Below are positions 37,877 to 54,012 of a DNA stretch of 64,000 nucleotides, piece by piece. The stretch is taken from the NCBI GenBank assembly GCA_964019335.1, contig OZ025664.1:434001-498000 (forward strand), in the 5' to 3' direction. Numbering within the stretch: the stretch's first letter is position 1; every line of letters starts with the position of its first letter. The notes beneath the pieces are model-generated. The model saw only the letters and a program-made list of their open reading frames with translations, ran no database searches and was not told the origin of the DNA. Origin of the DNA: Diplonema japonicum (Eukaryota; Protista; Euglenozoa: Diplonemea). A program made the position numbers and the translations under genes.

Positions 37877-38213
37877 ATGATAGAAAGCTACTTCCGAGTC
37901 CCACCTATAAAATTGAAACAGCCTGATCTGTCTTGGAGACCAGAAATGTGGCTGGTACAAGCAGGGCTCCTCTTCGCCTTTTGGCTGATCACCAGTGGCA
38001 TTGTGTACGACATGATCAACGAGCCTCCTGCAGTGGGCACTACCGACGGCCCAGGAGGGAGAAAGGTTCCTCAGGGCGTCATGGACCGAATGCAAGGGCA
38101 GTATTTCATAGAAGGGTTGACCGGAGGTTTCTACTACACTATGGGTGGGTCAGGATGCATTTTGGCTCATTACAGCCTCACAGCTCCTTGGGCCCTTAAG
38201 AAAAGAGTATGCG

Positions 38214-38246
<33 letters not shown>

Positions 38247-39891
38247 ACTATTTATTAAATAAAAATCAGATTACCTGATTTTTACGAGGAATTTTTTTTT
38301 TCACTTGAAATTCAAAAAAAACGAGTGAAAAAAGAAATTCCGAGTAAAAATCTGGCTGATTTTTATTTAATATGATATTTTATTTAATTTTTGTAAAGTT
38401 AAATGAGGAAATTTCGGACACTGTGAACCCTACATGTTCACTTCTGAGAAATGTTCACACTGATGTCAAAACTAAGCCTGATTGCCTGAGAAGGCGATGT
38501 CAAATTGACAGAATTCTGTAGGTTTTGTGTAATTTGTGTCGGCACTTGATCATCGCTCTTCAGAAACTGCTGGTTTTGTGCGGGGGCTTGATCAGGTCTG
38601 ACTTCCAGCCAAAACAGCAGGTTCCTTCATCAACAAGGTATTGTGCAAAAGAACGCCTGTATGCATGGCCAGTGTAATTTTCGGCATTTGCCGGCCTCAG
38701 GTGTGATGCTTGGTGGCCAGGAAACGTGGTAAAGTGTGTTTATGCCTCTTTTGCCTCGGATGCCTGACTGTTTTTTGCCTCAGATACCTGACTGTGGTTT
38801 GGGTTGGTTTGGGTTTCGTCTCATATTTTGCGAGGCGATTAATAATGTATGTGTCGAGCGACGTTTGTAAAAGCGCAACATGCTGTTGCTTAGAGCTTGG
38901 ATACGGCCATACTCTGGTGAATGCACCCCATCCCGCCTGATTTGGGAAGTTAAGCACCAGCAGGCCAGGTTAGTACTGCGGTGAGTGATCACGTGGGAAG
39001 CCCTGGTGCTGTATCCTCCAAACTTTTGGGCTAGCCTTCGGGCTAGTGGTAGTCTGGCCGGCTACCAATCCCCAAGGCCCGGGGTCGATTCCCTCCTCTC
39101 GGTATCTTTCGGGGAGTCGACCCGTGATCTCTTCCTCTCACATCATCTCCAACGCCAACATTCGGCTCCGGGCGGGGCCAACAAATCCTTCCACGGTGGA
39201 ATAACGCAGAAGGCGGCTCGATCCGTAAGTGACCACTGGCCTCTAGGCAACCAGTTAAAAACAGAACCGTCCCCCGTAGGGATGGGCAGTAAAGGAACAC
39301 TATGGCAGGAGAACCAGGGTTTCCGATACAAGTGCACTTATAGCAAAAAAAAAAAAAAAAAAAAAAAACTGTTGCTTAGTGGTAGCTCAGTGGTCATGTC
39401 GTCGCACTCGTCTCCTGGAGACGCCAGATCAAATCCTGGACCCTGAACTTTTTTCGATAAAATCGGGGTCAAAAAAACGGTCCCTCGGGGCTTGAACCCT
39501 CGACCCCTGAAACAGTGGCCGAGGATCCTGACCTACGGCGGTGTCAGCGGCCACCAGATGCAAAAAATGAAGACGAATGCCGAAAAAGCCGCTGCTCAGA
39601 GTAAAAATCAGATTTTACTTTATTTTTACGGCACTTTTTTAAGCCAAATTCGGCCTATTACTTTATTTTTATTCTTCACTTTATTTTTACTCGTGAACGA
39701 TAAAGTGATTTCTGATTTTTATGGCTCTTTAGGAATTTCCTCATGTAACTTTACAGAATTAAATAAAAAAAAAAAAAAAAAAACAGAGCATCGCCCTCGG
39801 GACTGCATTCGCTCTTGTGATCCTTGCAAAATTCGGGACCAATATGTTCTGGTCCATCAAAATGCCTGGCTACCGTCCGACTATGTTTTAA
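37877..39891 (+). CDS. OSTC: Oligosaccharyltransferase subunit OSTC/DC2; exons 37877-38206 and 39787-39891, 1,580-nt intron
   Basis: Exon 1: YFRVPP.KLKQP, ITSGIVYDMINEPPAVG, GQYFIEGL. Exon 2: SIALGTAFALVILAKFGTNMFWSIKMPGYRPTMF*, supplying the last TM helix and the conserved K(L/M)PGY end. Phase-0 intron GTATGC...ACAG. Confidence 0.9.
38253..38372. repeat. 120-bp fold-back palindrome
   Basis: TATTAAATAAAAATCAG ... CTGATTTTTATTTAATA (perfect 17 bp), with inner arms GATTTTTAC/GTAAAAATC, GGAATTT/AAATTCC and TTTTTTCACT/AGTGAAAAAA. Confidence 0.92.
38378..38415. repeat. Left inverted repeat (~37 bp), partner of 39732-39768
   Basis: TTTTATTTAATTTTTGTAAAGTTAAATGAGGAAATTTC versus the reverse complement of the right copy, TTTTATTTAATTCTGTAAAGTTACATGAGGAAATTCC. 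Confidence 0.92.
38438..38875 (-). pseudogene. Decayed tyrosine recombinase (Crypton-like/phage-integrase family), C-terminal portion
   Basis: Minus strand, across frameshifts: RYLRQK..RGINTL / PRFLATKHH / LRPANAENYTGHAYRRSFAQYLVDEG..FGWKSD / Q-N-S-rich tail to TGA. The H-x-x-R box (38653-38676) and GWKS box (38596-38610) of YRs are present; the catalytic Tyr segment is missing. Confidence 0.75.
38899..39017 (+). rRNA. 5S rRNA: 5S rRNA gene (119 nt)
   Basis: GGATACGGCCATAC...GAAGTTAAGC...GTTAGTAC...GGGAA...GTGCTGTATCCT. Helices pair (GGATACGGC/GCTGTATCC, CTGGTG/CACCAG, CCAGG/CCTGG, GTGA/TCAC); TTTT at 39024-39027. Confidence 0.96.
39028..39105 (+). promoter_or_regulatory. tRNA-like Pol III A/B-box unit (no proper cloverleaf)
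   Basis: GGCTAGTGGTAG ... GGCCCGGGGTCGATTCCC resembles the D- and T-loop boxes of tRNA-Glu/Gly at tRNA spacing. Begins with a CTAGCC-TTCG-GGCTAG UUCG hairpin. Confidence 0.5.
39376..39454 (+). promoter_or_regulatory. tRNA-like Pol III unit with T6 terminator
   Basis: A box GGTAGCTCAGTGG (39381-39393), T-arm-like CCAGATCAAATCCTGG (39424-39439), TTTTTT 39449-39454; acceptor and anticodon stems do not pair. Confidence 0.5.
39471..39555 (-). promoter_or_regulatory. Convergent tRNA-like unit with B box and T7 terminator
   Basis: Minus strand reads GTCGAGGGTTCAAGCCCCGAGGGACCG followed by TTTTTTT; A box is poor. Confidence 0.4.
39602..39721. repeat. Second ~120-bp fold-back, related to 38253-38372
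   Basis: TAAAAATCAGATTTTACTTTATTTTTACG versus the reverse complement of the right arm, TAAAAATCAGAAATCACTTTATCGTTCACG. ACTTTATTTTTA occurs three times inside. Confidence 0.8.
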
Positions 39892-53276: not shown

Positions 53277-54012
53277 AAAATAGCTATTTACTGCCAACAA
53301 ATAATGACTTTACCGTTACCTCGAGGTTCCGCATTTTACCGTCGAGGGCCCGAGATGGTAAAATGCGGAGCCGAGAGGTCGGTAAAGCATTACTTGGCGG
53401 TAGGTAAGTGGTTTTATTTCACGACACTCTGAAATTACTTCACCACGAGGGGCACAACAGGGTGACAAGGGGTACAACAAGAGAGGGGTTACAAAGGTTA
53501 CAATACAAGTTGTTTTTCCTCCTTTTGTTGACTAAGAGCTGCCGCTGTCGCTGGCATTGCCACTGTCACCATCTCTAATCAGGCCTTCTCATACCTGGCG
53601 CGGCCGCTGGCTCCTTTTTTTCTGCTGCTTCGGTATTTTGAAGTCATTTGGGGAGCTTGGGTAAGCTGACTAAGTTACCCTTACCCACAGAAGAGTTACC
53701 CCCAGAAACTGGGTACAAGGCCTAGCCAAAAGTGGGCAAATTGGGAGGAAAAAGTAGTCCAACTTGGAACTGAGCCGAGGCAAAAGTTGGCCAATTGAGC
53801 TGAACCTGGGGGGAAATTAGCAAACTGAGAGGAAAAAGTAGCCCCACTGGGAACCGAACCGAGGCAAAAATTGGCCTACCGAGGCATATTATTTAACGGA
53901 AACCCCCTATTACTTCACGGAAAACAGGCCATTATTTCACCGTGAAGTAATGAGATTTAGCAAGTAATGGGCCCCCCAGTGCGTGAAGTAATTTCTGAAG
54001 AGTGAAATAAAA
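53277..54012. mobile_element. Non-autonomous element: terminal palindrome, inverted repeats and internal direct repeats, inserted in a poly-A tract
   Basis: Fold-back 53285-53407 (core CTTTACCG..CCGCATTTTACC / GGTAAAATGCGG..CGGTAAAG). IRs 53412-53443 (TTTTATTTCAC..GAAATTACTTCAC) and 53983-54012. ~84-bp direct repeat GCAAA.TG.GAGGAAAAAGTAG...CCGAGGCAAAA.TTGGCC (53736-53792 / 53820-53876). Confidence 0.8.

Follow-up and report, generated by a model that had tools for sequence, protein, structure and literature searches.

5S rRNA sequence is known to move with retroelements. The 5S-derived portion of SINE3, the fruit-bat SINEs and Cassandra TRIMs is either a degenerate promoter head common to the whole family or a part of the LTR. 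In chimeric retrocopies formed by LINEs, such as U6/L1 and 5S/L1 of mammals and the tripartite copies of Magnaporthe, a small Pol III transcript lies in sense orientation on the 5' side of the retroelement to which it is fused (bioRxiv 10.1101/2025.02.02.635956; PMC2104539), and both partners lie within a single target duplication, with a single poly(A). Such events are recurrent and independent, and the 5S part of human 5S/L1 chimeras is mostly truncated and antisense (bioRxiv 10.1101/2025.02.02.635956). Other retrotransposons target tRNA genes. They integrate very close to the tRNA 5' end, at a constant distance, and leave the gene intact (PMC5006619); examples are Dictyostelium TRE5/TRE3 and DGLT-A, a dictyostelid non-LTR element that inserts about 4 bp upstream, and yeast Ty3. 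Classical Cryptons lack inverted repeats, and their terminal direct repeats are just 4-6 bp long (PMC3212892).

One intron of the protist Diplonema japonicum was compared with these systems. It lies in a stretch of 64,000 nucleotides, the window (contig OZ025664.1, positions 434,001 to 498,000). A sequence-only reading of this DNA had proposed that a tyrosine-recombinase (YR) element captured a 5S rRNA gene and disperses it. The follow-up analysis points elsewhere: the intron holds nested mobile elements, and the 5S copy very probably arrived independently, within a chimeric retro-insertion of 5S and a SINE.

The intron and its YR-type element

The exons on either side of the intron look like OSTC. 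Exon 1 (37877-38206, plus strand; 110 codons) was defined by its ORF, by spliced contigs and by a match to PF04756 (OST3_OST6) of 26.3 bits (E 6e-6), which slightly missed the cut-off of 27 bits. The last exon (39787-39891, plus strand; 34 codons and TAA) was read from the sequence and is covered by spliced contigs. The intron between them (38207-39786, plus strand; 1,580 nt) has GT..AG ends and contains the entire nested structure. In contigs from two runs (X6 and X11), position 38203 is joined to position 39796 with exactly 12 letters between them; they thus represent spliced mRNA from which the intron was removed whole and precisely. Deletion of 38245-39768 leaves GTATGCG, A31, A15 and CAG, i.e., 56 nt, so that both the long intron and the short intron of about 55 nt postulated beneath it were recovered. 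This short A-rich intron would be the first layer, and a non-autonomous element of about 1.04 kb, inserted into its A-run, would be the second.

The left part of this host element (38245-38893, plus strand) starts with TGACTATTTATT right after the A31 run, and its right part (39380-39768, plus strand) ends with GAATTAAATAAAA before an A run. Dozens of loci matched the left part (query positions 1-649) at 79-97% identity, and many loci matched the right part (query positions 1127/1138-1524), which adjoins the left part there. The family comprises dozens of assembled copies with a read depth of roughly 100-300x, and it ends in TRACTATTTAYT plus a hairpin on one side and in AAGTAAAA on the other. 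In the window, the hairpin is a terminal palindrome of 120 nt (38253-38372), detected as a self inverted match, with a predicted DNA fold of -38.4 kcal/mol (z = -9.2). The left arm of an inverted repeat (38378-38413, 36 nt) pairs with the right arm (39734-39768), with about 92% complementarity. The palindrome and the long inverted repeats had been described correctly from the sequence, and the element ends recur on dozens of copies in the genome. Family members are flanked by A-runs, without a consistent target duplication. A retroposon nature of the host element was rejected, a 16-bp duplication at L006 being outweighed by the absence of any at L004, L008 and L020.

A decayed recombinase remnant is located on the minus strand (38563-38739). 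As had been reported, this open frame, 59 aa in length, holds YTGHAYRR and GWKSD, i.e., an HxxR box and GW, without the catalytic Tyr region. A Pfam search with the 59 aa alone gave no match. The remnant shares 44% identity (E 1e-13) with L073:4899-5387 elsewhere in the genome, which itself scored 27.2 bits against PF00589 (E 3.8e-6; cut-off 27.1), and through this relative the proposal of a repeated, YR-related element stood. Of the catalytic residues (R..HxxR..(H/W)..Y), the remnant retains HAYR and, in GWKSD, the W; it has lost both the region of the box I Arg and the Tyr-bearing segment, in line with the decay claimed earlier, and a 6-aa gap is followed by a stop. On this sequence evidence, the frame is a dead remnant. 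Long intact YR ORFs (429-440 aa) occur at C7, C36, C60 and C73 (positions given: C7:842662-843270, C36:2669-3277, C60:185464-186072, C73:317899-318507). A protein database search returned one relative only, a transcript from Diplonema japonicum, and the feature-space clusters nearest to the YR were eukaryotic PF00589 and DUF3504 proteins. With regard to a DIRS, Ngaro or VIPER layout, the two related YR copies examined have no neighbouring RT, nor was an RT or another Pfam enzyme found among the ORFs within 10 kb around them; among the RT ORFs and YR places listed, no RT ORF was near a YR place.

The host element shares with Cryptons a YR-related remnant, the lack of a regular target duplication and non-autonomous copies that far outnumber coding ones. 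Unlike Cryptons, which are free of terminal inverted repeats, it has the 120-nt terminal hairpin and the 36-nt inverted repeats, prefers A-runs and carries two tRNA-like modules. The family, hairpin-ended and poly(A)-tract-seeking, probably descends from a Crypton-like YR element, and its copies probably spread by YR-mediated movement.

The tRNA-like modules and the 475-bp insert

Two convergent tRNA-like modules, putatively of Pol III type, are carried by all host copies. Module 1 (39370-39454, plus strand) has an A-box (TAGCTCAGTGG, 39383-39393), a B-box-like motif (39426-39436) and T6 (39449-39454); module 2 (39471-39548, minus strand) has T7 on the minus strand at 39471-39477. The label 'tRNA-like' refers to motifs only, since ARAGORN and Rfam called no tRNA, whether in the window or among 30 host copies. 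The A- and B-box motifs, together with the pattern of insertions, suggest that the modules are Pol III-type promoters, to which Pol III factors may bind. The modules had been overlooked in the sequence-only reading, as had an 11-bp direct repeat and an A24 tract.

Module 1 is the landing site of a 475-bp retro-insert (38894-39368). It is enclosed by two copies of CTGTTGCTTAG (38883-38893 and 39369-39379, both plus strand) that match at 11/11 positions; in other host copies, this unit is present once. The insert begins with a 5-nt junction filler, AGCTT (38894-38898, plus strand), which is foreign to the host and to the flanks of other 5S copies. A full-length 5S rRNA gene copy follows (38899-39017, plus strand), then the 5S 3' trailer with its U-tail (39018-39028, plus strand; tccaaactttt, followed by g at the junction to the retroposon 5' end) and a 340-nt SINE-like retroposon, designated SINE-A (39029-39368, plus strand), which has a tRNA-like head and includes an A24 tail (39345-39368). 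The 5S copy matched Rfam RF00001 over model positions 1-120 with 102.6 bits (gathering threshold 38), which confirmed that the gene is intact, and it is identical to the canonical genome copies (L038-L041) at 119/119 positions. In the SINE-A head, A-box-like and near-perfect B-box motifs were recognized by eye at about 39040-39095, where ARAGORN and Rfam call no tRNA. Filler, 5S, trailer, retroposon and A24 between 11/11 repeats constitute the arrangement of a chimeric retrocopy, and locus L040 is built alike. Long direct repeats, as in Cassandra TRIMs, do not surround the 5S copy; a single poly(A) and the 11-bp duplication do. In public reads from four runs, no 38893 to 39380 joint, i.e., an empty allele, was reported, contigs of repeats being unable to prove its absence.

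SINE-A has six other copies with 87-99% identity over the 340-nt part, each with its own 10-12-bp target-site duplication, a poly(A) and 2-4-nt fillers. 5S was absent from these six full-length copies and from the 5'-truncated copy L053; thus, seven copies lack the 5S head that would be common to the members of a SINE3-type family. As in SINE3, the fruit-bat SINEs and Cassandra TRIMs, 5S sequence moved here with a retroelement; unlike in those families, it is a one-off, sequence-perfect 5S.

The insertions showed a common site preference. In seven events (the window, L032/33, L035, L036, L037, L053 and L040), the junction precedes an A-box-like motif by 1-3 nt, i.e., independent insertions took place at a constant short distance, as for retrotransposons that target tRNA genes. 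Two of the seven adjoin tRNAs called by ARAGORN or Rfam, the one at L035 being a real tRNA-Gly. On the right, the insert joins the tRNA or tRNA-like unit within its initial 4-7 nt, a loss made good by the duplication. Modules of the host family received three independent SINE-A insertions; two of these, each with an 11-12-bp duplication, occupy exactly the same position of module 2 in two further host copies. The host modules appear to attract retroposons. The known tRNA-gene-targeting retrotransposons differ in that the junction here is inside the first nucleotides of the unit and that the targets include degenerate tRNA-like modules on a DNA transposon.

Origin of the 5S copy

Since the 5S copy is part of a poly(A)-tailed, duplication-flanked insert that also contains an unrelated retroposon, it is best explained by an independent later retro-insertion. 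The insert is younger than its host, because the 5S copy is canonical and the retroposon is up to 99% identical to its relatives (87-99% over six copies), compared with 85-96% for the host copy. This third layer would have been inserted at the 5' edge of module 1. A LINE-encoded enzyme would nick DNA a few bases before the A-box of tRNA genes, and reverse transcription, primed on the poly(A) tail of the 340-nt SINE-like RNA, would proceed to the RNA 5' end. It would then switch templates onto the U-tail of pre-5S rRNA and copy to the 5S 5' end; the cDNA would be joined via the five filler bases, and the 11-bp target duplication would form. That the 5S part was added specifically by template switching onto pre-5S RNA is somewhat more probable than not. 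The genome contains many intact RT ORFs; an alignment of the SINE-A tail with the LINE tail of L040 was no better than shuffles, and no LINE partner was tied to SINE-A.

Related chimeras occur elsewhere in the genome. L040 comprises 5S, trailer, the 3' end of a LINE ORF2 and A8; its 15-bp duplication extends into a tRNA-Val. Scattered 5S copies joined to the 5' end of a LINE or SINE include L050 and L060, where 5S with variable 5' truncation meets a LINE 5' end. The trailer sequence is also present behind other 5S copies, where it ends at variable points. At five loci, 5S is fused to differing subfamilies of a repeat, X, with T-run tails and about 1,400 first-look candidates; no Rfam family was found for the X body behind these five 5S copies. 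The 5S-X fusions could be T-run-seeking elements that entered 5S terminators, instead of switches. The reads are dominated by 5S in its canonical context, at about 1,500x single-copy depth in X1; therefore, the scattered copies are orphons. Unlike in the LINE-mediated chimeras of mammals and Magnaporthe, the partner in the window is full-length and SINE-like, with LINE 5' or 3' ends at other loci, and integration is aimed at tRNA-type promoters. Unlike in human 5S/L1, the 5S part is usually full length and sense.

The same chimeras bear on the possibility that Pol III read through the weak TTTT of a 5S gene into an adjoining retroposon, so that a composite RNA, a nascent 5S-headed SINE, was retroposed. 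The trailer has only four Ts, some retroposon copies begin with TTT(G), so that the junction shares TTT with the retroposon 5' end, and SINEs derived from 5S have been described (Kapitonov and Jurka 2003, cited by bioRxiv 10.1101/2025.02.02.635956). However, 5S and SINE-A were adjacent at no other locus of the assembly, all 35 candidates having been scored, and 5S is combined with at least four different partners, with variable trailer positions and 5' truncation, which fits repeated switching better. Read-through from a composite 5S-SINE source gene outside the assembled sequence is thus regarded as unlikely, and we infer template switching.

Less plausible still is a succession of two insertions into one point, in which the retroposon with its duplication arrived first and 5S was added at its 5' junction, or the reverse. 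5S and the retroposon each occur separately in the genome, and the tRNA-like head of the retroposon could itself be a target of Pol III-directed insertion. However, there is only one duplication and one tail, the 5S copy having neither of its own, and L040 likewise has 5S first within a single duplication.

Capture of the 5S gene by the YR element, with Pol III genes spread as cargo, has become very improbable. The element is indeed YR-related and repeated, and tRNA-like modules are part of every host copy. However, nine contiguous full-length copies without the insert all lack 5S, and at least 13 other copies run uninterrupted over the insertion site. A comparison of the other approximately 18 5S loci found none within host ends, except that the diverged host copy L057 contains an 81-nt fragment of 5S in roughly the same position. 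The host parts of L057 are only 78-90% identical to the window copy, compared with the 100% canonical 5S in the window, and the fragment is read as a second, older insertion at the same hot spot, not as inheritance. In place of cargo, a poly(A)-tailed block with an 11-bp target duplication and an unrelated retroposon was found; thus, the independent later insertion of 5S, named beforehand as the outcome that would speak against capture, is what the locus presents. Mis-joining of repeats within the intron is hardly credible: all components are repeats and none of the public contigs covers the stretch in one piece, but the host halves are in register, the perfect duplication carries copy-specific substitutions, the splice sites are intact, and L037, L053 and L040 follow the same grammar.

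Meaning for Diplonema and its mobile elements

With the independent retro-insertion of 5S and SINE-A, the attractive but mistaken idea that a DNA transposon captures Pol III genes falls away. What stays is a clean, datable case of mobile elements nested within an intron that still functions. Three features of this little-studied protist lineage deserve the attention of specialists: a retroposon system directed to the initial bases of tRNA genes, which looks convergent with elements of Dictyostelium and yeast; 5S orphons, some of them sequence-perfect, that are made as LINE/SINE chimeras; and the Crypton-like family, with hairpin ends, poly(A)-tract preference and built-in tRNA-like modules.

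Tentatively, two transposon classes may exploit each other in D. japonicum: YR modules would serve as landing pads for LINEs and SINEs, YR elements would settle in retroposon poly(A) tails, and switching onto pre-5S would be the main route that scatters sequence-perfect, potentially active 5S copies outside the canonical array. If this doubtful view is true, transposons would feed each other, and working 5S genes would spread as a by-product. No part of the locus introduces a new principle; together, the parts offer testable handles on Pol III-directed integration beyond the usual models.

Host element in the OSTC intron

The GT..AG intron between two OSTC-like exons (38207-39786) was 1,580 nt long. 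Exon 1 matched PF04756 with 26.3 bits (E 6e-6), slightly below the 27-bit cut-off. In contigs from two public runs, 38203 and 39796 were linked by exactly 12 letters; one of these contigs, whose run carries the label of another organism, showed four exon SNPs. Since 12 letters are expected for precise splicing at 38206|39787, the entire nested structure is removed as an intron. Transposons in introns have been reported for the Diplonema papillatum genome (PMC10161547). The other items described in the sequence-only reading were also found: a residual intron, here ~56 nt, a palindrome of 120 nt (fold -38.4 kcal/mol, z -9.2), inverted repeats, here 36 nt, and a minus-strand peptide with YTGHAYRR and GWKSD.

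The query 38245-39768 was searched against the genome assembly of the same organism (G000; 62.5 Mb, 132 contigs). Query positions 1-649 and 1127/1138-1524 matched dozens of loci with 79-97% identity and were adjacent there, and the middle part had no match at these loci. Nine other copies aligned end to end with a 1,038-nt model of this host element (38245-38893 plus 39380-39768), and the junction of its halves was uninterrupted in at least 13 other copies. Its read depth in public run X1 was ~100-300x that of the exons.

The tyrosine recombinase (YR) remnant of 59 aa (38563-38739, minus strand) alone had no match in Pfam. An ORF located on a different contig shared 44% identity with it (E 1e-13) and reached PF00589 with 27.2 bits (cut-off 27.1), supporting the earlier claim of a YR-related element. 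A related 259-aa ORF fell among eukaryotic PF00589 and DUF3504 clusters in a language-model look-alike search, a lead only. The sole database relative of the YR was a Diplonema japonicum transcript (84% identity). The 10-kb surroundings of two related YR copies contained no reverse transcriptase. Host copies start with TRACTATTTAYT, preceded by an A-run or by TA-type ends, and finish with AAGTAAAA followed by an A-run; a consistent target duplication was absent among them. Thus, the host element is best labelled a non-autonomous, tyrosine-recombinase-derived, Crypton-like DNA element seeking A-tracts. Neither its hairpin nor its inverted repeats are features of classical Cryptons (PMC3212892).

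On contig C69, a 1,011-nt tandem duplication (98% identity) was seen at L073:533-2560 (C69:27532-29559) within an 899-aa ORF that had no Pfam match. The duplication adjoins one of three identical YR-bearing segments (~31.6, 67.0 and 82.6 kb).

The 5S rRNA gene as part of a retro-insert

The full-length 5S rRNA gene (38899-39017, plus strand; Rfam, 102.6 bits vs. a 38-bit threshold) agreed at 119/119 positions with the best genomic 5S copies. It lies in a 475-nt insert (38894-39368) composed of AGCTT, the 5S, its trailer tccaaactttt and a SINE-like 340-nt element (39029-39368), ending in A24. On both sides, the insert is flanked by CTGTTGCTTAG (38883-38893 and 39369-39379), and a homologous 11-mer (consensus CCGTAGCTCAG) occurs once at the insert position in other host copies. 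Because three private substitutions are common to both window 11-mers, the duplication was created at insertion. Separately, most host copies contain an internal 11-nt tandem duplication, GTAGCTCAGTG GTAGCTCAGTG, at a site homologous to 38883-39393; it yields two overlapping A-boxes, and loci L009 and L023 hold a single unit.

Six further copies of the 340-nt element (87-99% identity) were found in the genome, all of them lacking a 5S. Every copy is flanked by an individual duplication of 10-12 bp, ends in a poly(A) tail of its own and has 2-4 filler bases before its 5' end; a seventh was 5'-truncated (105 nt). Such duplications, tails and fillers mark target-primed reverse transcription. RT-coding candidates number in the hundreds in this genome, and many have intact frames of 1,400-2,000 aa. 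The retroposon part of the insert was 99% identical to its relatives and the 5S perfect, compared with 85-96% for the host copy; thus, the insert is younger than the host element. The 5S gene and YR-related repeat first noticed in the long intron were confirmed. Capture and spread of the 5S by the YR element, as the sequence-only reading had proposed, was refuted by its own test, since the 5S is a separate retro-insertion and other copies lack it.

Insertion at tRNA-like units

The right junction of the 340-nt element lay 1-3 nt before an A-box-like motif (TRGYNNAGTGG) in all informative copies, and a B-box-like motif followed ~40 nt beyond. The downstream unit was called as tRNA-Gly(GCC) at L035 and was tRNA-like at L032/33 and L036. 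Two tRNA-like modules in convergent orientation, module 1 (39370-39454, plus strand) and module 2 (39471-39548, minus strand), occur in the host family; a T-run follows each, and neither was called as a tRNA by ARAGORN or Rfam. These modules were the sites of three independent insertions: that of the window lies at module 1, those of L037 and L053 at the same position of module 2 (duplications GCTGACACCGC and GCTAACACCGCC). In addition, module 1 is replaced by an 81-nt 5S fragment (5S positions 30-108, 95% identical) in L057:1284-1836 (C73, about 196850-197400), a host-family copy that is diverged, has an internal deletion and is 78-90% identical to the window copy in its host parts. This fragment is read as the trace of an earlier, independent insertion at that hot spot. 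Short-range tRNA-gene targeting by retrotransposons is described for dictyostelids and yeast, with one non-LTR element ~4 bp upstream (PMC5006619). Very probably, the window feature is a chimeric 5S-SINE retrocopy that is nested in a Crypton-like non-autonomous element and was aimed at one of its tRNA-like modules.

The one exception to the A-box rule was L034, with another hairpin-ended element (TAGCTATTTACT...) within its poly(A) tail. This element belongs to the same family as window 53281-54012. As this copy sits in the tail of a retroposon, poly(A) tails serve as targets of these YR-type elements. Copies of this second family start with TAGCTATTTACTGCC right after an A-run and end with ...GTGAAATAAAA(A)n; they were also seen upstream of the 5S in L042, and that of L034 runs from position 1838 onward (reverse-complement).

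Source of the attached 5S

About 19 above-threshold 5S copies were present, each single and on different contigs. Their similarity begins at +1 and ends at variable trailer points, and a long T-run terminator occurred only at L038/L039. As the L038/L039 flanks are the predominant surroundings of 5S in the reads (5S depth ~1,500x single copy, run X1), the scattered copies are orphons. The 5S of L038 (C59:511924-512042) and L039 (C15:778588-778706) is canonical, preceded by a GC-rich flank and followed by a T13 terminator. A contig end is ~1 kb away from L038, and the flanks of both loci dominate 5S-adjacent loose ends in reads. This suggests that large 5S arrays were collapsed or omitted in the assembly.

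Repeat X (~320 nt; e.g., L046:1626-1945, C86:158267-158586, and many other places) begins with (A)GGTGGTGGGGATAAC, ends in a T-run and is located in T-rich tracts. There were ~1,400 candidates at first look, the 40 scored being 97-99% identical, and Rfam had no family for it. Possibly, this repeat is a SINE with a T-tail that primes on A-tracts. Units Z (L042, L056, L024) and Y (L045, L055), 41-45 nt followed by a T-run, stand directly behind 5S trailers, each once behind a full and once behind a 5'-truncated 5S, with Z also behind a repeat X copy. They may be retroposed read-through Pol III transcripts. Contigs C52, C61, C51 and C13 (e.g., C52:97399-256214) carry dense clusters of intact RT ORFs (1,100-1,480 aa), with several 5S copies and fragments inside at C52:176778, C52:246942, C61:52528 and C61:81995.

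Many orphon 5S copies were fused to retroelements. L040 exactly parallels the window insert: it consists of 5S, trailer, a LINE ORF2 3' end and A8, and is enclosed by a 15-bp duplication, the right copy of which extends into tRNA-Val. L041 joins a 5S to the 3' end of another LINE; L050, L060 and a twin on the contig of L060 join a 5S to a full LINE 5' end with differing 5' truncations. Five 5S copies stand directly in front of repeat X, of both young and old subfamilies. A read-through transcript of a composite 5S-retroposon source gene is an improbable origin of the window fusion, as no such locus was found in the assembly. The window fusion and the other 5S-retroelement fusions match a class already known, that of LINE-made chimeras containing U6 or 5S RNA (bioRxiv 10.1101/2025.02.02.635956). 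Due to this match, a template switch onto pre-5S RNA is favoured, with some confidence, as the source of the attached 5S. Reverse transcription would have reached the 5' end of the retroposon RNA and continued on the U-tail of the pre-5S RNA; at the junction of the 5S and the 340-nt element, TTT is common to both sides.
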